Assembly: GCA_000320545.1 (NCBI GenBank)
Contig: ADNK01001949.1
Span: forward strand, 54,845-118,844
Direction of reading: 5' to 3'
DNA length: 64,000 bases
Source of the DNA: Bigelowiella natans CCMP2755
Taxonomy: Eukaryota; Protista; Cercozoa
Shown: piece after piece, positions 7,212-61,049 of the stretch
How positions within the stretch are numbered: the stretch's first letter is position 1
Layout: the number at the start of each line of letters is the position of its first letter
Made by a program: the position numbers and the translations under genes
Notes under the pieces: model-generated
What the model was told of the DNA's origin: nothing
Databases searched by the model: none
Seen by the model: only the letters and a program-made list of their open reading frames with translations

Positions 7212-10200
7212 GTGTGTGTGCGGAAATTTTATTGTACACAGTATGAAAGGAAGTCACAACACAAATCTTTTCAAGTTGCAGAAAGGCATTTATTACCTAC
7301 TTCCGGTACTATGGAACACTCAGACTGTTTTCTTCCTGCCGAGACTTGAAATCATCCACATCAATCACAAATTTTACGGGGTTCCAAAAGGCCTGGAAAC
7401 AAACTTACGATTCATAGTCACATCAACCTGCATGAAGAAGTGTTCGACTCATGTGTTTGGTTGCAATTTAGGAACACTGGACTCTGCATCCAATGGTCCG
7501 CAACAGATCAACAGTTTATGCGTGAGTTGAGCAAACAAAACCCTGATGCACAAAACTCAAGAGACATCATCTTTCCCCTGCTAGCCTGCCATCCAGCTTC
7601 CTGGCCATTTTGTTGAAAGAAGACTTTTGTTTTCACTGAAATCTTTGAATGAAAATTTTCATTGGGAAACGCAATGGTGTGTTGCTGTGTGTGGTCTCCA
7701 TGTGGATCCATTGTTGCGTTCATCACTCCATCCATCGATGGATCTTTTCACTGTCTTTCAGTTTCGAGGGAACAAAAGAGGAATTGGACAGGGCTTTGAA
7801 GAAAAAACATCATCGTTTGAAGGAGGTTGCCTTCTTGCAAGTCATTGAGCGTACACACATCGAGTTGTTCCTCCCAAACGACACTTCAGCTAGATGAGGA
7901 ATTCACACTTCGTGTTTTTCCGTTTTGCATCCATCAATGTGGTTCACTGAATTGAAAATCGAAGTCCACTCTCAAAGTTCAATTCAAATTGATGTTTTGT
8001 TTTTGTTGTGTTTGTTGTGTTTCGCATTGACTTCCAAAGTTGCTGTCTCCTGCTGAGGGTCTCTGTGCTTCACTCACACAGACTCTCGAGAAACAACTTG
8101 ATTTTGATGTCACGTCTCCAAAAAAGTGAAACATCAATTTTTTGGTCTGTGCATGCACAGCTCGTTTTCTCAACGATGAAGCCGTGCGTGCAAACTGGCA
8201 TGACAGTGCACAATTGTGGCCTTGCGCAATCGTGTCGCATTGAACGCCAAGCTCCGTGCGTGCTCAAGCGGCTCGTGCTGGCGTGTGAAGTCGGTCAGCA
8301 ATGGAAGCTGACCACGCATTGGTTGCTCAAAACAACGCCGTTTCGTTGTCACTTCGGCACGCGGTGCCCGGTGGCGATCCAGAGCGGGCAACCCAGCGCC
8401 CACGTGGCCCGCTTTTGAGGTCCCAAGTCTCACATCACTCCCGCGGCAGCGGGAAAGTTTTTTGAGATTTTGGGACCCCAAGATCAAAAATCTTCAACAA
8501 AATGAATGAAATTGACAGCACATTTCAATCCAAAGTGCACGTGCGTGCGACACGCATGTGTGCACAACACTGCACGTGCGGCGTGTGGCGGTGCGTGCAC
8601 GGCGCCGGGTTGTGTGTGAAACAGAGGGACGTGCGTCAATTGTTTTCAAAGTGTCACGTGCAATGGCCACACACATCAGTTTCCACCACACAACTGAAAC
8701 AAGTGGGCAGGGGCGGATTGATCCTTTCATCACACACTTCAAAATGACACGTGACAGCTGCTGCACATTGATTTCCATCGCACAACAGCATCGACCTCAG
8801 AATTCTCGAGTGTGTGCTCGAACTGATCTCGCACCGCGATGTGCTTTGATGTTGCATGGCAACGCCTGGGATGTTGCGCATTCCTGTCCTGGCTGGAGCC
8901 GAGCGATACCGCCCGCTCCGTCCAACCTCCAAGTGTTCAACTTGCAGTTTGCCCAACCGCACGTCTTTTGCTCGAATTGGGAAAACCTTGTTTGTCACGT
9001 CAGACAGTTTGGTCCCTGCAATTGGCCAACAGACGCGCTGCTAGCTGATGCTTGTGCTTGCACGTTGATGCAATCAATGCCATTGAAAACAGAACACCAA
9101 AACCCTGATGATGAAAATGCATTGTGAGGAGCTTGAGCATGCATGCCAAAACAAGCTCCCAAGAGGACATCACCGCTCGCACGCGGGTCTTTCAACTTTT
9201 GCGCGCGCGTTTCACTTTGTTGCAACTAGCTCAGTTGAACACATCACATCACGCTGTTTTTGGATTGAAAGGGTGACATTTTCCCCCAACGTCATTTCGC
9301 CAACTTGCAACCCAACTTCTTCCATGTCGCACTGGCCCAAGCGGGGTTCTTCGCATCTTGACCAAGCTTGATGCCAAGTTCTCCAGCTCTTTGAGGGGTT
9401 GCTCTCAACGACACATGCGCCTTGGGTTTGAGTGTGACAATCCATGGTTTTCCACAGCGGTCGTTGTTCTTGCATTCCGAATGATCCCCTTTCCAGCACT
9501 TCTCAGAAGCACGACAGCTCCGAGTTCTCACAAGAAGCTTCCCAGGACACCCAATGTCCAGCACTTGGTGCAGTTTCTTGACACCGACCAACGTTTCACA
9601 CCCTCGAATGTTCCTGTCTGCAGCTCCATTTCCACATGCGGGCATCCAGTGAAACACCCGACGATGCACGCCTGCTCCTTTTTTTGAACAAAAATCTTTG
9701 CAAAAACTTGTCACGTTGTCCTGGAAAAAGTTGAAGGCATCCTCGGCTGACTTCATCCTTGAAACTTCGCCTCCATCTGCGTTCAGTTGCTCTCTGGCAA
9801 CTGCGTTTTTCACGTCACCATGTGAGGCACCATCCACTTCGTCTTTCCCATGAGCGGTGCCGCGGAAGCACCAATCCATCACGATTCCAGTTCCAGGTTT
9901 GTGACTGCCAATCCACAATGCATGAGTGCTCAATTTGCACTGCGAGGGAGCCCCATCTGATGTCACAGCTTCGCCTTCTGAACTCACGTTTCTTTTTGAG
10001 TGAGGCGTCAGGTGCTTGTCGTCAGCGTGTTGCACAAACGCATTGTCGTGGTGCAAGTCCGGGGACACTGCGCAATGGAATTCCCTCACAATTGGGTGCT
10101 TGTTGCATCGTTGAAAGTGATCTTTGAGCTTCTTGCGCTCTGCCTCGTCAACGTTCTTGACATCATCGACTTTGACGTGGAACACGCAACCGCACAGTGT

Positions 10201-13200
10201 GACAGACACTTGAGAATGACGTGGAGATTGGTGCTCAATTTTGGGCTCCATTGACAGATTCTCACCAAAGTCTTGAACTTTTCCTGCCCATCCTCGTGGA
10301 GGTCTTTTGAACGCAAGAGCCTCCGCGCTCTGCCGTTTTCCTGTGTCGTGGTGGAGGATGTGTGTCGGCCAATGTGCTTTGAAGTGCGACACGAAGTCAT
10401 TGAAATTCCCTCTCTCAACTCCAACAAAGTCTCGCTTCTCTTTCACTGTGCCGTCCTTCGTTTCGTGTTCAATTTTTTCACACTTCACCCAGTTCACTGT
10501 CAGGTGATCCACGTTGTCGTTCTCCTCGACACACTCGCAACTCTTCACCAGTTTCAAGTCTTCACAGGTGGAACACCAATGCTGGAAAGACAAACCAGGC
10601 CTTGACCCCCTGAGCAATGAGCTTGTGGATTTTCGATTTGAGTGGTGTCCTCAATTCTTCAAGCCCGAAGATGATTGCGAACAAAACATCGAACTTCGAA
10701 ACGAAATGGATGCACTTCGTCGAAGTCTCACCCACGACCAAAGGAAAGAGGTGTGTGATTTCAAGTCGTTCAATTCAAAGAAGAAACTGAGTCCATCCTC
10801 ACGCAAGCAGTGGCAAGTGCACTCCTGTGCACGACAAAGAAAAAAAAGTTGTCAATCGCATGGACGCAACTTTTGCAAAAACGACCCATGGTGACAAGCA
10901 AGGAGGCTCGGCTGCCTGCTGCTCTTTCACCGTGAAAACACCCCAGGATTGCGGATGAGGATGAAACCAATGGAATTGAATTGGAGTCACCTCGATCAAA
11001 AGCACCATCCTGTCCGCATCCGCGCTTGAAAGGCCCAACTCACACAACACTTTGACAAGTGAGTTTTGAGCAATGACAAGTGAAAACGATTTTGACCATC
11101 CGGGTTCTTCTTTCTCCCCCCTTCCTTTGAGTGTTGAACCAAAGGAAACGAAAGAAATCCCGTGTCAAGTGACCACTCGCTCCCCCCCCTCCTGCCCACC
11201 AAAAATGCCTGCAAGGTCGTGGGGGGTGATGTTGTCCTGCACCACAAACTTTGCACAAACGATGTTTTGAACGTTTTCAGTTGTTCATTGTCTCACTCCT
11301 GTCAAAGTGAAAAGGCACCCTCTTGTTTCGATGAACAAAACGACAAACGCCAACGTTTTGTTCTCGAAAGAGCTTGCACCTTCTGCAGTTTTTGGGCAAA
11401 CTTTCGATTTGCGAACACGTTTTTTTTTTCAACACGGTTGCTGTTGAAACAGTTGCACTTGAAACTGTGACACCCCCCCCCCCACAACGTCACTTCTCTC
11501 TCGTCTGTGTTCTGATTGAACAAGAGAGAAAAAGGGAAGCGTGGTGGGGTTTGAAGAGGTTCGTGTGCAGCCAATGCCAGCCACAAGATTTCGATCCTGA
11601 TGAGTTGCGTCGTGCACAAAGCAGTTTTTCATCACGACGACAATGCATGCGCGTGCATGCGTGCGTGTTGTGTCGTGGTTTTTGCCTGCTCTGCACTCAC
11701 GAGCAACACTGGGACAGTTCCACTCAGTGACCAAGGTCACCTTCTGACTGTCACCACGAGAGCGCATCACTGAGTGCTGCTGTGCGTCGTGCTCCGCGTG
11801 CACACCACACTTCGCAACTTGTTGTCAACAAACTGAGAGGAAGGGCAGCGTGTTGGAGTGCTTGGCACTCAATGTCCGAAGTGTGGATCTGCGACACGCA
11901 GTCAGCGAGCGTTCGCCGAAGTGCGACAAGCGGTTGCTGCAGAAGCAGCGACAAGCAGGAGCACAGGGCAAGCTGACAGTGCGACACGGCAGCGCAACGT
12001 CGTGCAACGTGTCGTGTTGCGGCACGCGACTGCTGAGTTCACTTCCTCTGGCAGCACGTGCAAAACTGTGCTGCACGCGCGTGCAGCTGCGTTCTCCTTG
12101 GACACAGAGTTGAGACCGCCCACCAGCCGTCTTGCACCTGCCTCCTTTGCTGTCCGCCGCCCAGCTGGCCGCCGCCGCATCGCCCTCTTTGCTGCACACG
12201 TTTCCAACAACACGGCTCAAAAAAGTTTTTTTTTTTGGCACGAACGCGTCGCAAAACCTGCACCCAACTGCGCGCACTCTTGCCACGACTTGGTCTTGCG
12301 ACAAGCCTTTGACAGCTCCTCACTTGCTGCAAACTGCGGCGACTTTGGCCTGTTTTTGCGCCCAACCTTGGACTGAGTGGAAACGTGGCGATTGTGTTCC
12401 CGTGGTGACCAATTGAGACAACTGTGCAAGCCACTCGTGCGACCTTGGAGGCGTTTCCGACGTCGCTTTGGCGTTGCGACTGGTCAACGCGGTCAAAGAG
12501 GTTGAAAATCGCGCCTCCTTGGACACTTGTGACTGCAACTTTTGTGCCTGACCGTTTTGGCAGTCCGAGCGCGTGCGAAGGTGGTCCACGTCTCACCTTG
12601 CTCCCCTTCCCACTGAGGAACGAAGCTTGTCCCACCACCAAGCGCCACCTGAGAGGCCTGTTGTCGATTGCAACAGGCTCAGAACACTCGAATCCAACCT
12701 CCTCTCGTCCAGTCGTGTCAGAACAGGACTTCGGCTCCCCTCCTCTCACTCATCTTCCTGAGGACACGGAGACTTCCGAGTCTGAGGTCGATCACACCAC
12801 TCCACCGAGGCGTTTGAGCTCGAGGGAGCCAGCTGAGGACACGGGCACGCCACTGGGAGCAGGTGAGAAGGTCCTTTTGACCAACTGGCCAAAGTGACAG
12901 TGAGAGCGTGTTCTTTGTGACTCGACTGAGGTGGCCTGTTGTGGCGTGTGTTGACGGTTGTTGTCGTTGCTGTCGCAGTTTTGTGGTGTCGTGGAGGTGA
13001 GTTTTTCGTGCTGTGTGTGACGTGTGAGTTTGTGAGTGGTCAAGAGTGCTGGAGTGAGACACAACCCACCCAGGAGGAGACGAACGCTCTCAAAAAACAG
13101 GCACAGGAAAGCAACGCTGTCACCAGCAAACCTGTGAACCTCCAACAAGAGGTTGACAAACTCGAGCAGGAGCTCGCAAGGAAAAAGGAAGAACACGAGG

Positions 13201-16200
13201 AACACGTCGCGGAACGAGACACCAAGCACAAGGACAAAACGACAAGGTGCCACGTGCTGGTCCAGTGGTGCCGGCCGTTGGTGGTCCTGAACTTGCTGTG
13301 CACTCCAGCGCTCACAGGAGCCACAGGCCAGCAGGGTGACCCTGTGGACGGCAACGAGCTCGCGGAGAAGGACTTTGAGGATCGCACGAAAACGCTGCGC
13401 TGCGAGTTGAAGGGCCCGATCACACACCAAGGCCCACAACTTCCACAGGCAGGCCCTGAAGTTCGACCGCACTCTCGACCCTGACTGGGAGGAGTCAGCC
13501 TGCACGCAGTTCAAAACACCGAGCTCCTCCGCACTCCAATCGCCTCGAACGAAAGCGCACGTTGACAAGCTCAAGGGCCTCTTCGAAGCGTTTCACGACA
13601 AGAGCACCTTGGAGTCCGTGGAAGGCGAAGTGGACATCGAGGGAGCGGTTGCGTCTGAGAAAGACGTGCGATGGGTGCAAACGGGGCTCGAACTGAGGGA
13701 GAACCAGAGGAGGCCCTGGCTGTTCACGTCAAAAGTGAAAAAAGGGGGCGTTCCAAAGGAGGGCAACGACAGTGACACCGTGCACACTGGAGGGAGTGGG
13801 AGGTCGATGAGGCCATCGCCCGGGGCCAAAAGCAGTTGCGAGAGCAGCAGCAGCAGTGAACTGCACTCGGTTGGCAACGTTCGGTTGTTTCGAAGAGTCC
13901 AAGTGCTCGTTGCGTCCAAGGACGTGCGAGGCTTGCCAGCTCAGCTTGCTGGCTTGTTCGCTGCGATGCACTGTTGTGACTGCAGCCCTCTCTCGCCTCC
14001 GTGATGAGTCGTCCGGTGCAGTTCCTTGGCACTTCCTGGCTTTCTTTGTGACTGCAGCTCCCTCTCGCCTCCACAACGAGTCATCCGGTGCAGTTCGTTG
14101 ATGCTTCCTGGCTCTCGTTGCAACTGCAGCTCCCTCTCGTCTCCGTGACAAGTTGTCCGGTGTGGTTCCTTGATTCCTGGCTTTCATTGCAACTGCAGCT
14201 CCCTCTCGCCTCCACAACGAGTCACCCGGTGTTGGAAAAATTGAGGTCAAGAGGAGAAATCGCAGAGTTCATTGCACTGGCACGACGTCACGTTCACCTG
14301 AGAGCAAAGAGGTTGTCAACGTTCGCAACTTTGTGCGCCACCACTCAGGCACTTTGGTCAAAAAGTTTCCACACCTTGGAGGCGAGGAACTTGGTTGTGC
14401 CTGTTTCAGGGTGGTGGCACTCTTGCAAGTTTCTTTCCATGCTCGCATGGAGGAACTGCAAGGACACTTCCATCCCACTGTTTGCGAAACCGTGCCCCAG
14501 GCAAAAGTGGAGTTCGAAACCAAGGCACATCGCGCACGTTGTGCACTTCTTTTCTCTCTTGAGAGTGACACACTCCAATGAAAAACGTGAAACTGACGAG
14601 TTTTTGGACACCAACTGGAACACTGACAACAAAAAGTCGTTTCACAAGTGTCCAGGTTGCAGCGTTCATCGTCGACACGTCCCGGAGAGGGAAGAACTGG
14701 ATTCGTGGTGCTCTTTGCTTCGGTTTTGCACGCCGTTGCTGCACGATCACACGATCGCCTTGAAAGTCGACGACTTTCAAGTGCTTTTCAGCTTGCACAA
14801 AAGTGTCACGCACAGCAGCTTTTGCCAACCTTGGACACAAGCAACGTGGAAGGAACACACACGTGAATCACGTGGTTCTCGAGGTGCACCGAAGTGCTTC
14901 CACTGATTTTTGGTCGAACTTCAGCAAAAGTCCAAATCGTGGCAATTGAGAACCTGGAGAGTCCACGTTGTCAACTTGTGGTCGCAAAGTGCTTCGTGAC
15001 ACCCACTCTGAAGGTGTCAAACGTGCAAGTGAACACTTCAAGGTCACGAAAACAGTGTGGAACTGCACCAAAACACTTGGCACTGCCATGGGAGAAGGAC
15101 ACCTTCAACCGAAACAACCAGAAATCAAAAACAACACCCCGAACAGACACCCAATTGGTTCACGGCCAGACGGGGCGCATCGAAGACCTTGTTCGTGTTG
15201 CACGGACGCACGTTGCGTGCACCTTCGTGTTCCCCGATCGTGCCTCCACGGTGCCTTTCGGTGCAACGTGGGTCCTTTTTTTCCTGCCATCATCGCGCCC
15301 AATCGTCGCTCGAATCACTCACCTCGAACCCAGAGTTGGAGGTGTCGTTTGGTTTGTGTTCAGAGGTGCAGCCGAAGCTTTGTCCTGGTGGAGCCAAGTG
15401 GTTGGTTTTCCAGTCGAAGTGCGATTCGAACGAGGTTCAGAGGTCGCCACACCGTCCACGCCAAAGGAGGGCACCTGCGCTCTCTTGGACTCCAAAACTT
15501 GGCAACGCAGAGAACGCACGTTGCACGTGCAAGGTGCACAACCACAACTTGGGCACGGAAGGCGATTTGAGTTGGGAACAACTGCTGCTTGGACAAGCAA
15601 AAACAAACACGTTTGGCAAAGTTGTCAGAGGTGTCAAAAAAGACCACAAACGGGTTGGTGTCACAGGAGGAGTGTGCAGGTGGAGGTTTGAAGGACTGGC
15701 ACTTCCTGGTGAAAAAAAAGAGGAGCAAGACGAAACAGGTGCTCTGCGTGCTGAAGCACAAAACGGTGCTCCAGTTTGGCAGTGCTGAAGACCCAGGTTG
15801 AAAAGTGGGAGGTGGTTGAACCACTCAAACAACAGCACAGCGCACTCGTTTTCGCACGCACTCAGCAGTCGCACACAGCAGCTCAAAAGGAGGAATTGCA
15901 AGTGCTCCAAGAGAGGAACGATGCTGCCAAGAGTGAGGTGCAACTCACCCAGGAGGAGACAAGTGCTCTCAAGAAGCAGGCACAGGGGAGGTGCGCCACC
16001 AGCAGGCCTGTGAGTCTTCGACAAGAAGTTGACAAACTCAAGCGCAAGAGTTCGCAAGGAAAAAGGAAGAACACAAGGAACACATCGCGGAAGGTTGGGT
16101 TCGTGTTTTCACCGGGTCACGCAAAAAGTGCGAGGGCCTCACTGCCACGTCGAGCCCCAAACCAATTGCAGTGGAAGCAGTGAAAGGGAAACCTTCCTCG

Positions 16201-19200
16201 GTTGACAGCTGGGCAGGCACGGAGGTGCAACGAAGAACCTCTGCAAGGCGTTTCGCGTGAGGACAGGTCCACCACCATCGTTGCCCACGCCAGCGTGGTG
16301 GCCAAGGCGCCCGCGCTGGCGCGGCTCTTTGGCTCTTGGCGACACAAGCCTGAGTTTGCGCGGCTGGCACGGCGAAGGAAGAGGAGTGCCAGGCGAGCCC
16401 AGCTGGCCAGCTGACAGGGCTGCTCACTCTGCTGGTCTGGCACTGGTGGGACGGCAAGGCACCTCAGCTCCAAGTTCCAACAGGTTTGAGAAGTTGCAAT
16501 GTTCGTTGCCACGTTGCAAGCTTGCAAACTGAGAGCAGCCCATTGCAAGTTCTCAACACTGACTGAGCTCGGCGAAGGAGCAGTCAGCAATCCGCGGAAA
16601 CACTTTTCTCACCTCTGAACGCCCACTCTCCTCCCACTGGTTGGAGAGCTCCAACGCGGAGAGAGAACGATGCACTGAAATTGCTCCAGCTGAGCACGAA
16701 CACCGTCTTCTGCGGAGTCAACAAGAGAGACAATGCTCTTGACTTTCACGGACCCGTGTCGAAGGCACTGGCCACAGCACCCAAGACACGGTCCTCACTT
16801 TTGTCAAACGACGACCCCACACCCAAAACTCGAAACCGTCCTCCAATCCAAGTGCACCAGGCTGGCAGGTGAGGCAATGAAGCTTTGTCAATCACGACCT
16901 GTGAGCAATCCTTCACTGCTCACAAAAGTGTTCACCACGAGGACACACTGAGCAAGTCACCACGACCTTTTTCTGGTCAACAGTGCCAACCTTCCTGGCT
17001 TCCAGGAGGAACCCACGAGGTGGCCGAGCGGTCCAAGGCAGCGCTTGGCAAAAAGCACGCCCTGAAACCACGGAGGCACAGTGGTGGGCCTTTTCTTGGC
17101 GGCCTCGAAAGTTTCTCAGGAGTTGAGACCGTGGACGAAGTTCAAAAGAACAAAAAGGCTTGGGAAAGCCCCCTCCCTGTGAGGCAGCTTGGACGTTGTT
17201 CTCGACAGTTTCGGAGTTCCTGCTCGAGCTTGGTGCAACCCACGTGCGCACATCGAGCGGAACCATGGAAGACGCCAGTTGTGTGCAGGTTCACTCAATT
17301 CGATGAATCGAATGCCAACAACGTTGAAGATTGCCCGAGCTCGTGGCTGTGCGAGGGAGGCAAGGCCCCACCTTCACGGACAGTGCCTCTTTTGGAAACA
17401 GATTTTTCCGCGTGTCACTCTTGCGACAAGCACTTGACACAGACGCATGGCTGCAAATCATTGGAAATCCATTGGCGGCAGCGAGAATTCCAATCCCGGA
17501 TTTTTGAACGAAATTGTCGAACTGATGAGCAAAATATTCGCTGTTTTTTTGATGCGACAATGAAAAAATGATGGGCTTTGCTCCAAAATTGCAAGCCTGT
17601 CCCACGATGGAGGTCGGGCGTGTTCACAGCTCTCACGTGCTTCTGAACACGATGTGATGTTTTTTTGATGAAGGGAAAGGTCGCAATTGGAGACGAGGAC
17701 ATCAGGCTTGAACAGGCTTACGCTGCTAGGAAAGTCATTGGTCTGATTCGAAACTTGATGCACTGCTGGATGAAATACTGCATTTCTGTCAGATGCTGGA
17801 ATGGATGAATGCATGCAAATCATTGAAAACCTGAAATGTTGCTTTTCAGAAATCCTTCAGGCACGACTATCAGAGGACCATCTTGAATTGGGAAAGGTTT
17901 CAACTAAATGTGAACATCGAACATTCCACGGACTCAGCTTTTGATTGTGATTTTTTGTGAACATGTGGCAGGACAAAAGACTGATTGAACAATTTGGAAA
18001 GGCTTTGAAAAACAAGGTATTCTTTCGCAATTTATGTCCATCTTCCCAATTTTCACCATCGTGAAACAATTGTCTAGGACATCGATACGTTTGAGAACCC
18101 ACCTATCATTCGGTTCTCAGCAGCAGTTGTGAAGGTTTTCGTCCATTTCAATTTGTCAACGAAAGAGATCATGCAACAAAAACTGTTGATAGATCAATCG
18201 ACTTAGGTCTCACCAAAATCGGGTGCTTCTACTTACAGATAGGTGTCAAAATATATTATTTTCGCAAATGGTCGAAGAATCATGCTGCATCTGTGCACAG
18301 GGCAGTTTACAATCTGGTTCCAAGGACCCTTCAAGTCAAACGAAGAATAAATCTACAGGCGGTGATAAAACTGTCTACACTAATAAATTTACTTTGAAAA
18401 TATATAAATTTTTGGGGAAATATCAGATATCAAGCATTACCGTATCACTTCCACCTGCACAGCATTTCATTATTCATGTGAAGGTCACACCACAAACATT
18501 ATCGTCAAAACCTGATCTAATGTGCATTCATCGAAAAGGACGAATATGACTATTTGTACAAGTCGGATAAGAGGTTCATTTGTGATTGCATTATCAATTT
18601 AATAGAAATTCGGACTAAGCCACATGCATTATTTCGTTGGATCGCAATTTTTATTAGAGTTAATTTTTTCGAGAAGCTTGCGGAAGCGTATGGGTAATCA
18701 TAAAGTTGTCCTCATTACTGAGTGTTTCTTCTTAAGCGACTATTTGTCATCGTAGAAATGTTACGGGAGGATTGGAGCTTGACATGCAGATTTCGGAGGT
18801 TACACTCCGAGCTATAACTACAATTAACACTTCACTCTATGAGTTACGGCAACTATTGTTTAGTTACAAGACTTATCAGCAAAGGCAAAGACGAAGTCTT
18901 TAGCAGCTCGGCAGTTAGAAGTGGTGAGAAAAAGTTAAAACACCCCTTTCTCCAATAACTATCCGTTATCTATCTAGATTCGAAAAAGAGGGGAATCGAT
19001 GCAACTTTGGGGGGTAAATTCTTTTAGAATTCTGTGTGGTTTAAATCTCATCTGCAAAATAAAACAATTTAAGATTCGAAAGGCTCGCAAAATGGTTCGG
19101 GGTGAGTGGGTCTTATTCTTTCACTTTCCTAATTTGAACAGCATTATGTTCTATAATATCAAGGGAAAAAGAAACATGTGACGACGGACACCGGTGTCGA

Positions 19201-58679: not shown

Positions 58680-60880
58680 CAGTTATTCGCAATAGTAGCT
58701 CTTGCACATCATCTGTCATAACTTCTTCGCATGCATTTTGGCCAAATGAACACACACAAGTTTCAACAACCATTGCAGATGGATCTTGGCTGTCACTGCA
58801 CCGTCAAGTTTGTGTTCGTGACAGCTAATATTTGTGCTGTCGTCATCATGCAACATCCTTTCCATGCTAGCATGCATGCGATCTAGCATTAGCGCGTCAC
58901 GCAAAATCTCTAGATCTAGAGCATGCATGCAAGTTGAGCAGTGACTGCATCCGTTGATTCTTGCATGTCATGCATGCACATCGCTCCGCGTGAGCCTGGG
59001 GGTGGGGTCCACAGGACCCGCAGATCGAGCGATCACATCGCGGAGTCAGAAATCAGTGAATGATTTGTGGAACCGCCGACTCGCGCAAAATCTCTAGATC
59101 TAGAGCATGCATGCAAGATGAGCAGCTCTAGATCACGACAATGCAGCATGCAGGGATCACCATTTTGTGATTTTGATGCGGCGGACAAGGAAGAGATGAA
59201 GCGTCAAAACGCAAGTGTCAACGATGGCCATCTGCTTTGCGCAAATGCGCGTAGCATGCAACGAACTAGAATTCACAATGACAAAATGCTTTCGCATGTC
59301 CAGCTAGCGAGGTCCAACAAAAGTCATTCGCGCGAGAGCAATCACACAATTCCTCATGCAACATGCATCATCATTCGATCCGCCTCATTTGTGTCATTTT
59401 TTTACATTTTCCCTACTCTTGCATCACGGCGGCATGGGTAGTGCTAGGGTGCAAGTGGCGAACACTTGCTTGAACACCCGCATGATCGAACAACTCGTTG
59501 CCCATGTGTTCGTTTTCATCACTGGCCATTGGACCATGATCACGACAAGTGAGAAATTGATGAACATTGAACATTGAATTGAGATTGAACATTGCACGCT
59601 GAACATCGCATCGATGCAAACACCACTAATGTGGAAGATCAGAACCACAGAATCACACATAAAACCAGCATTTCTAGCGTTTGCGGTCACAGTAGCGTCT
59701 TTGGCCTGCGATGCCAGCCAGCACCAGTGCAATGACGGAAAATCGTTGCGAGAATTCGTCAACATCTTGCGATCTTGCGCCAATGCTCTCTGGCGCTGGT
59801 CGTGTTGGTTGCCCAATGCAAGAGCTAGCTAGCTGCGTGCGCAGGCAGTTTGCTAAAAGTTTGGTGGATCAGTTGAAGGACGCGCAGCAGCACGCACGTG
59901 CAGCACTTTGGCGGCGAGACGGAACACCAGCTCGGTTGATTTCTGTCAGTCTGGACAGCATCCCACTTCTGGAACCCTGAGCAGGCAAATGCTTGTTTTT
60001 GGACGTCGCAGCTTGTTCCAGTTTCTTCAATCCCAAAAAAGTGTTCTGGTGTGATGTCGGGCAAGGAGGAGACGCACTTTGGCCCAGAACCACGTCGATC
60101 CTCAGACCCAGCGTGGCTTGCAAGTGCGCAAGGCTGCATTGCGCAATGTGAGCATTTTGTGCGCACTGACTGACACGTCTCGATCAAACCTGCAACAAAT
60201 GCGCACTTTTTGGGACAACTTTTGATCCAGAGCACTTTGCGCAACGCGCAGCGACGGGAACACCCCCAGCTAGCTGGATCAATTTGGCTGGAACAATCAC
60301 ATTGGTAGACGTGTCGACGCGCACGCCAGACGTGGTGAGCTGTGCATGTCACGACCGATCAAACCCGGTGACACGAGCATGGCGCACGATTGATTGCTTG
60401 GCAGCTCGGGCCGCGCGGCCGCGCCCCCCGGACGCATGGGTGTCTGGCAAGCTGCCTGCGCTTTTGTGGCTCGCGCAAGAACCACGTCGATCCTCAGACC
60501 CAGCGTGGCTTGCAAGTGCGCAAGGCTGCTTGCAGCTCACGTTGTTGCAATTTGTCATTGAATTGATGAACGTGTGAATGAAGGAACTCCACAGGAGCTG
60601 GTGAAAGGATCACAGGCCACGCTGCCTCATTGAGCATTGAACATTGAACACCAAACTGAGCAAGAACCATCCATGATGCCTTAGTCAACCCATGAACAAT
60701 GAACAATGAACAATGAACAATGATGGAAAACTGCATCTCCAACAAGAAAGTGTGACATGAACAATGAACAATGAACAATGAACAATGAACAATGAACAAA
60801 GCATTGATCGCATGCGCCAGAACCACACGGCATGACACTTGCAGTCAACCATTGGGCATCGCTGAGAAAGAGTTGCTCTA
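58680..60880. mobile_element. TpA-depleted decayed repeat or TE remnant with internal duplications and (TGAACAA)n arrays
   Basis: TpA rare and mostly CTAG; Cys/His-rich overlapping ORFs; exact duplications 58900-58933/59084-59117 and 60086-60137/60478-60529; TGAACAA tandems ~60693-60798. Family not identified. Confidence 0.55.
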
Positions 60881-61049
60881 ACAACAGATTTTTTTCTGGT
60901 GATTTTGGCTAAAAACTCCGCGATTCCGAATGATCAATCCCATCATCCACAATCTCCTGACATTTTCATTCGTTGTGTTCGAAATCCAGGGCCTTTTACC
61001 GGTAGTCGTTTTAGAAATGCATCGTGCATTTTGTTGTCGCACTTCGGAA

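Follow-up and report, generated by a model that had tools for sequence, protein, structure and literature searches.

In repeat-induced point mutation (RIP), known from Neurospora and other fungi, CpA is converted to TpA, which enriches the DNA in AT, creates stop codons and requires a duplicated sequence. APOBEC3 enzymes deaminate C and cause G-to-A hypermutation of retroviruses and retroelements, typically turning Trp TGG into stop. Here we analyse a 64,000-nucleotide stretch of Bigelowiella natans CCMP2755 (contig ADNK01001949.1, positions 54,845 to 118,844; hereafter the window, with coordinates counted from its first letter), in which an open reading frame (ORF) without a single Tyr very probably represents a dead transposase relic, lying in a 10-kb nest of mobile elements where TpA-directed hypermutation has run to completion. 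Process and locus are already on record for this species. Using mutation-accumulation lines, Mettrop et al. 2026 (bioRxiv 10.64898/2026.01.13.699255) found a mutation rate ~1000x that of the rest in two viral regions integrated in B. natans, almost exclusively through changes of TpA to TpG or CpA, and they proposed an adenine deaminase and named an ADAT2-like candidate, Bn78255. The same work reports 324 low-TpA coding sequences (CDS), most of them unannotated, and 124 genomic clusters with a long-term footprint; the ORF studied here is listed as gene 77508 in its Tables S6 and S8 and left unannotated, and its main text mentions neither tyrosine, stop codon, missense, CTAG nor transposase. Our additions are small: a reading at the protein level and the identification of the gene as a transposase relic, with a secondary ApT target, sparing of CTAG and a single-copy target gene as further increments.

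The locus agrees with the published hypermutation in species, target dinucleotide and products, in the loss of TpA with gain of CpA and TpG, in the A:T-to-G:C change on both strands and in the mobile origin of the target. It differs in one respect, as the published changes occur 'only on TpA', whereas in the most heavily mutated part of the region ApT is lost too. Like RIP, the process is genome-resident and places context-specific transitions on both strands of mobile DNA while sparing the rest of the genome. The change is however the opposite one (TpA to CpA or TpG): it raises GC and, rather than making stops, removes TAA and TAG, and TpA, which RIP enriches, is 0 in the region, with CpA/TpG enriched. 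The transposase gene is furthermore single-copy in the assembly, although neighbouring pieces are repeats, and thus its targeting is not a RIP-like sensing of duplication. With APOBEC3 the locus shares a deaminase-type, context-specific hypermutation that marks the victim proteins at the codon level, but here it is A:T pairs that change, the telltale residue is Tyr, and nonsense mutations cannot arise.

The affected region, hereafter the island, contains a TA-free gap of 8,308 bp reaching from a TA at 9227 to the next at 17535, while elsewhere in the window about 60 TA occur per kb. Across ten consecutive 1-kb segments, the observed-to-expected ratio (o/e) is 0-0.09 for TpA and 1.36-1.64 for TG/CA; the TG/CA ratio reaches at least 1.52 at 8-10 kb and at 11-12 kb, with the rest of the island a little below. 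Overall, CpA and TpG amount to 1.4-1.6x expectation, and CpG, at 0.82-0.85 of expectation, is not depleted. The borders are gradual and fade across 300-500 bp. None of the six frames contains TAA or TAG across 8.3 kb, and between 9228 and 17534 the reading stays free of stops for 100 codons or more in 43 runs, nine of which extend over at least 200, as compared to 3 and 8 runs in controls of equal length. An open frame inside the island hence means little by itself, because the erasure of TpA strips TAA and TAG. The ~10 kb of the nest comprise a transposase core and three repeat families.

A context-specific loss of 100% could in principle reflect base-calling bias, and a sequencing or assembly artefact, for instance a systematic miscall at a modified base, would then account for the island. 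Independent DNA runs of 2021 and 2025, however, give contigs identical over the ORF, with 0 differences from the window over 9317-10700 and 8700-9054; the TG and CA outcomes differ between paralogues of the repeats; and the Illumina mutation-accumulation lines of Mettrop et al. display the change de novo. The TpA-free sequence is not an artefact, and we give that explanation practically no weight. Over the ORF no TpA is left for further mutation, and the 2021 and 2025 runs do not differ there.

The ORF (minus strand) encodes 441 residues, among them 21 Cys and 28 His but no Tyr. Within its core of 412 codons, TGA is likewise absent from the homologous frame, versus 8-18 occurrences in each of the other five (P ~2e-6), and a word search retrieved 12 relatives; the ORF is therefore a genuine coding relic. 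The closest relative, P0002, is a protein of 719 residues from a seawater-metagenome contig, 58% identical, and its own CDS holds 68 TA. Homology of the relic to the family begins at P0002 residue 169, and the core, the counterpart of residues 169-582, has neither TpA, Tyr nor an in-frame TGA. The two ends of the ORF, ~14 residues at its start and ~16 at its finish, have no homology in the family, the last ~16 codons and the stop being supplied by an inserted repeat. Beyond this insert lies a C-terminal piece of the same gene, in which its sole surviving Tyr codon is located (TA at 8907), and a search of the whole genome recovers the same two pieces.

The fate of Tyr in the relic is unusual in the family. 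The relic retains none of the 16 Tyr of P0002 aligned to it: eight read His, five Cys, and one each Arg (CGT), Trp (TGG) and Phe (TTT). In pairs of unaffected homologues (n = 1498), Tyr is instead retained in 73% of cases, its replacements being Phe (11%), Trp (4.7%), His (2.9%) and Cys (0.1%). Given this homologue rate of 3%, at least 13 Cys or His at 16 Tyr sites has a probability of ~8e-18. A family that is naturally poor in Tyr, or one from which ordinary divergence or selection has removed it, would explain the bare absence of Tyr and nothing more. The homologues, though, contain 1.9-4.1% Tyr, as against 0 in the ORF, and keep it in the pairs just described, and all six frames over 8.3 kb are TpA-free, non-coding DNA as well; we regard this possibility as negligible. 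A reading of the DNA made from the letters alone (the sequence-only reading) had proposed that an ancestor with TpA was converted by the single steps TAY to Cys or His, Y being a pyrimidine, and the 13 of 16 sites bear this out. Neither Cys nor His occupies these columns in any of the 12 relatives examined.

The same picture emerges from individual columns. The Cys of the motif SDGAPSQCK, which had been pointed out as standing in place of Tyr, indeed does so: 11 close homologues have Tyr (8) or Phe (3) at this position, and in an alignment of 42 sequences 98% of the residues in the column of Cys227 are aromatic, none being Cys or His. At four columns with 88-100% aromatic residues in this alignment, the relic reads Arg133, His134, His206 and Cys227. 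We also reverted each Cys and His singly to Tyr and scored the outcome on a hidden Markov model (HMM) built from homologues only, which avoids circularity. The score rose by more than 1 bit at 13 of 47 positions (+44.7 bits summed), and at 11 (+33.5 bits) with P0002 left out of the model, while five homologues, each excluded from its own HMM, gained at 0-2 positions, by 3.2 bits at most.

The five peptides that the sequence-only reading had quoted as Tyr footprints are all present in the translation, as is the complete lack of Tyr; as footprints they are of mixed value. Five of their 11 Cys and His residues are footprints, five are original and one is unexplained, and two of the peptides are partly or wholly wrong in this respect. 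EFHC recurs unchanged in P0002 and was never Tyr; the His in it is an invariant residue of the family. Conserved, original His residues are also H89 and H90 (ILHH), H323 (VFHW) and H181, and H86 falls on an invariant Phe, of which His is not a one-step product. The underlying observation itself is confirmed and statistically overwhelming, and its direction, as well as the survival of the frame and of the Asp motifs, had been rightly read.

Mechanistically, the process turns TpA into TpG or CpA, an exchange of A:T for G:C that may fall on either strand. In a Tyr codon, a hit on the A of the coding strand turned TAY into TGY (Cys), and one on the A of the template strand yielded CAY (His). Tyr is the only amino acid with TpA in all its codons, which is why every Tyr codon of the core was converted, and since GAY cannot be struck, the catalytic Asp motifs survive; indeed, four invariant Asp are kept, congruent with the earlier view that these motifs are intact. 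The frame, in turn, stays open because this change turns no sense codon into a stop and itself removes TAA and TAG. This last point had been made for the ORF as a whole. It stands as far as the six frames lack TAA and TAG; the frame is however open over the core only, and the gene is truncated and frame-broken. The present data show the direction and the specificity of the changes, the fold and the intactness of the acidic residues.

Cys and His occur 5:8 (P = 0.58), and TG and CA 115:130 across the ORF; therefore both strands have been struck about equally. This bears on RNA editing of the ADAR type with a UA preference, followed by reverse transcription and integration. ADAR favours a 5' U, and there are known cases in which repeats undergo A-to-G hyperediting (Mettrop et al.). 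A cut-and-paste DNA transposon has however no RNA intermediate, the near-equal strand counts speak against an edited transcript, the island spans several unrelated elements with fading edges, and Mettrop et al. document mutation of DNA in situ, which leaves this route highly improbable. Decay of CpG, by which Arg codons (CGY) would become TGY or CAY, also has its classical footprint in an excess of TG and CA, and some repeat columns indeed offer CG, TG and CA as alternatives. Yet the tract has the CpG content given above, paralogous repeat copies keep TA at polymorphic columns, and the step from TpA to TpG or CpA has been seen arising de novo by Mettrop et al. The protein alignment rules out an Arg ancestor that suffered CpG decay, as the relatives show Tyr or Phe, and not Arg, at the columns concerned; the chance of it being correct is minute. 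The one Arg among the former Tyr sites, Arg133, has the codon CGT (10219-10221); its column is 95% aromatic, with Tyr in 12 of 12 close homologues. A change of TAT to CGT may represent a double conversion of a single TpA, on both strands and possibly in a single event. For codons ending in TA (ATA, TTA, CTA and GTA), ten of the 17 aligned sites end in TG today; this comparison is uninformative because synonymous sites are saturated at 58% protein identity. Coordinates of all features are collected in Table 1.

Table 1. Features of the TpA-erased island and of the transposase relic (positions in the window).
Feature	Position	Strand	Remarks
TpA-erased island	7583..17534	.	5 TA left in ~10 kb, 0 in 9228-17534
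C-terminal transposase piece	8783..9025	-	other frame; P0002 residues 635-717; tblastn 60%, E 2e-23
Truncated repeat copy, first ~320 bp	9027..9346	.	TpA-erased; its 2 surviving TA both in CTAG
ORF, 441 aa	9292..10617	-	100% identity to jgi/Bigna1/77508
Transposase core relic, 412 codons	9340..10575	-	tblastn vs P0002: 58% identity, E 7e-161
Asp262, HGKDEVDG, helix start in model	9832..9834	-	intact; invariant in family; candidate third catalytic acid
Cys227	9937-9939	-	occupies column 98% Tyr/Phe
Asp221, SDGAPSQCK	9955..9957	-	intact; invariant across 42 family members
Asp187, SPDLHHD, just past strand beta-4 in model	10057..10059	-	intact
Asp116, QDFGEN, strand beta-1 in model	10270..10272	-	intact
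Second repeat family copy	11100..12196	.	TpA 0, ApT 0.35 of expectation
880-bp repeat family copy	14320..15201	.	~70% of ApT lost to GpT or ApC, per paralogues

How much of the damage is due to hypermutation was assessed at 146 columns where P0002 matches the majority of more distant relatives. The relic deviates at 28 of them; TpA-only steps explain 11 (39%), and TpA steps together with ApT-to-GpT or ApT-to-ApC steps 17 (61%), the extras being chiefly Ile>Val and Met>Val. In control lineages the same steps explain far less, with 2 of 114 deviations (2%) for TpA and 6 of 114 (5%) with ApT added in P0002, and 0 of 10 in P0003; of the two, P0002 is the lineage whose changes are numerous enough for a judgement. 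We infer that the missense load alone would have been lethal to the transposase, and loss of the four near-universally aromatic core positions was probably inactivating by itself. Hypermutation is nonetheless not the only lesion of this copy, since it is truncated and interrupted. The Cys/His-rich N-terminal region of the family (~165 residues) was not found in the window or in the whole genome, and between the core and the C-terminal piece ~52 codons are gone, a repeat is inserted (9027-9346) and the frame changes. The earlier claim that the element was disabled mainly by missense change accordingly holds in part: 39-61% of the replacements can be explained in this manner, but the lost N-terminus, the repeat insert, the missing codons and the frame change are structural damage.

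These lesions equally leave room for a different order of events, in which the transposase died earlier or independently, through truncation, insertion or deletion, and TpA erasure is a consequence of its residence in a silenced transposon island. The extension of the island across several unrelated repeats and non-coding DNA points in the same direction as the structural lesions, as do the 11 of 28 lineage-specific changes that are not of the hypermutation type. On the other hand, a single copy cannot reveal the order of events. Hypermutation acted at least after the insertion, because the inserted repeat itself is TpA-erased, and possibly before it as well, and the loss of the four aromatic positions would probably have sufficed. 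We consider an earlier death nearly as probable as its opposite, falling a little short of an even chance.

Several observations count against the account of a relic whose Tyr codons were erased by TpA-directed hypermutation. Three of the 16 Tyr sites (Arg CGT, Trp TGG and Phe TTT) are not simple one-step products. Eleven of the 28 lineage-specific replacements suit neither the TpA nor the ApT context, so that ordinary divergence or decay contributed too. The genome lacks any paralogue of the transposase, whether intact or less heavily mutated; the ancestral codons are for this reason deduced from a metagenomic relative at 58% identity and not seen directly. The catalytic triad is a candidate one, set from conservation and position in the predicted secondary structure rather than from measured geometry. 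Finally, that the mutating enzyme is an adenine deaminase is something we infer.

Searches at both the protein and the DNA level returned no second copy of the transposase gene in the 91-Mb assembly, and DNA polarity was therefore read from the inserted repeat and from an 880-bp repeat family, where changes were polarised by the state that most of four repeat paralogues share. The inserted repeat belongs to a family of ~600 bp with more than 35 genomic copies, which begins TGCAATT..., ends ...GACCGACCACAC and has a short internal duplication; read depth over the copy in the window climbs up to ~38-fold. In nine paralogues (L003-L011) the same columns are variously TA, CA or TG. All copies examined are TpA-poor, also those with TA-rich flanks such as L003, with 92 and 80 TA per 1.4 kb. 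Since copies are TpA-erased also in surroundings of normal TpA, the element itself seems to be targeted, beyond its neighbourhood.

In the 880-bp family, 58 ApT sites are common to the four paralogues, and at these the copy in the window has GpT at 21, ApC at 18 and ApT at 15. Seven sites show opposite derivatives in the window and in the paralogue L013, and 12 columns display all three states; an ApT ancestor follows, as these patterns have no other explanation. The spectrum is dominated by T>C (38) and A>G (37) vs G>A (13) and C>T (9). Along the window, the ApT o/e rises from 0.32 at 11-17.5 kb through 0.76 at 7.6-11 kb to a normal 1.12 in a weaker island at 59-61 kb, which suggests that TpA is converted first and ApT later. 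Six TpA are left between 7582 and 9227, and four of them are within CTAG (7582, 7891, 9042 and 9227). One CTAG is likewise kept in nine of ten aligned copies of the inserted repeat, the window copy included, while the remaining TpA are lost. The single-copy gene in the island is fully converted, which argues for regional and not homology-dependent targeting. Altogether, we somewhat favour a mutator broader than published, with ApT as a slower second target after TpA, protection of CTAG, regional and homology-independent targeting, and ghost ORFs that pass as orphan genes.

Two side observations concern these repeats and the distribution of TpA. The 880-bp paralogues L014-L017, 96% identical, have a CpG o/e of 0.49-0.55, and the window copy and L013 of 0.79-0.85; 22 sites are CG in the window copy and CA or TG in L014-L017. 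The excess of CG in the window copy reflects either a CpA-to-CpG change there or CpG decay in L014-L017, and the three-state columns with CG, CA and TG may stem from double TpA conversion or from CpG decay. Separately, the interval 59000-61000 of the window is a second, weaker TpA-poor island, with a TpA o/e of 0.19, CpA/TpG at 1.54-1.62 and ApT normal at 1.12. It has the look of a less advanced phase of this process.

As to the protein family, a profile search of 1.84 billion representatives yielded 2,138 relatives at E <= 0.001. Among these, just one source name points to an organism, that of a Lithocolla globosa transcript, and the other named members are 'hypothetical protein'. No Pfam match was obtained for the ORF, nor for 13 close and 8 distant family members. 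A lead to DUF7869 ('Cc8L18.2-like', Atlas) was dropped, as hmmscan gave no match, and a PF25273 search of the own genome matched nothing, although neither did its control. AlphaFold2 (AF2) on the core of P0002 with the 42-sequence alignment gave a confident model (predicted local distance difference test, pLDDT, 91.5; predicted template modelling score, pTM, 0.85), and an earlier one from 13 sequences (pLDDT 43) was discarded. The order of elements in the model is beta-beta-alpha-beta-alpha-beta-alpha. VIA-align places it with the cores of retroviral integrases and of the Mos1, Metnase and IstA transposases (Z 9.0-9.9, 143-175 aligned residues), and among its best 24 matches all 24 are integrase or transposase cores; Foldseek against the PDB remained non-significant (E ~0.01 at best), with matches nearly all RNase H-like. 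The predicted fold is thus that of an RNase H-like transposase core with a DDD-type set of acids. D116, D187, D221 and D262 are the acids invariant or nearly so in the family, and the motifs QDFGENL, SPDLHHDN, SDGAPSQCK and HGKDEVDG are each unbroken in the relic; by its conservation and its place in the model, Asp262 is a candidate for the third catalytic acid. As an observation in its own right, the family (P0002-P0161, alignment A3) combines 2,138 cluster representatives and a confident integrase-like fold with the lack of a Pfam model, and it is a candidate new curated family, plausibly equivalent to Sola2.

The comparison with Sola2, a cut-and-paste superfamily (Bao et al. 2009), was done by eye with the transposases DFa-2 and PPa-1, whose sequences are printed in the supplement of PMC3627910 (Bao and Jurka 2013). 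The motifs DF.EN, S..L.H, SDGA..(F/Y)K and HGK.D.D occur in the same order, with nearly equal spacings, likewise judged by eye, of 35/36, 35/37 and 6/6 residues, and the predicted RNase H-like core is a further likeness. The two differ at one acid, as both published proteins have Asp at S-3, whereas the Asp past beta-4 of the P0002 family is at S+2. Sola has been reported to have no Pfam similarity (PMC5751038), which the P0002 family shares, a weak and non-specific feature. Aggregated, the Sola2 label of the relic is plausible on motif collinearity. No convincing pair of inverted repeats flanks the relic, and neither terminal inverted repeats (TIRs) nor 4-bp AT-rich target-site duplications, both expected of Sola2, were found around this truncated copy; weak pairs, for example two 20-nt arms at 7343 and 10748, 85% complementary, were judged chance pairings and rejected as TIRs. 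The element is 5'-truncated, and at least one of its ends is probably lost. Regarding expression, a true RNA-seq run, of which ~6% was read, has nearly no reads on the ORF; a contig covering 9141-10700 comes from a run merely guessed to be RNA and is no proof of transcription.

The secondary ApT context, the sparing of CTAG and the single-copy target narrow down the mutating enzyme and its targeting. For other genomes, a Tyr-free ORF with Cys and His at conserved aromatic columns constitutes a diagnostic of TpA hypermutation that reveals its polarity, because Tyr is the sole amino acid always encoded with TpA; paralogues are unnecessary, and confusion with CpG decay does not arise. For B. natans it is the protein-level corollary of a recently reported eukaryotic process that resembles genome defence. 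As stops cannot arise and TAA and TAG are erased, relics stay open and become annotated as orphan genes. Ab initio models in such islands, for example Bigna1 77508 (486 aa), may thus largely be ghost ORFs, which bears on the gene catalogue of B. natans, with its 324 low-TpA and mostly unannotated CDS (bioRxiv 10.64898/2026.01.13.699255).

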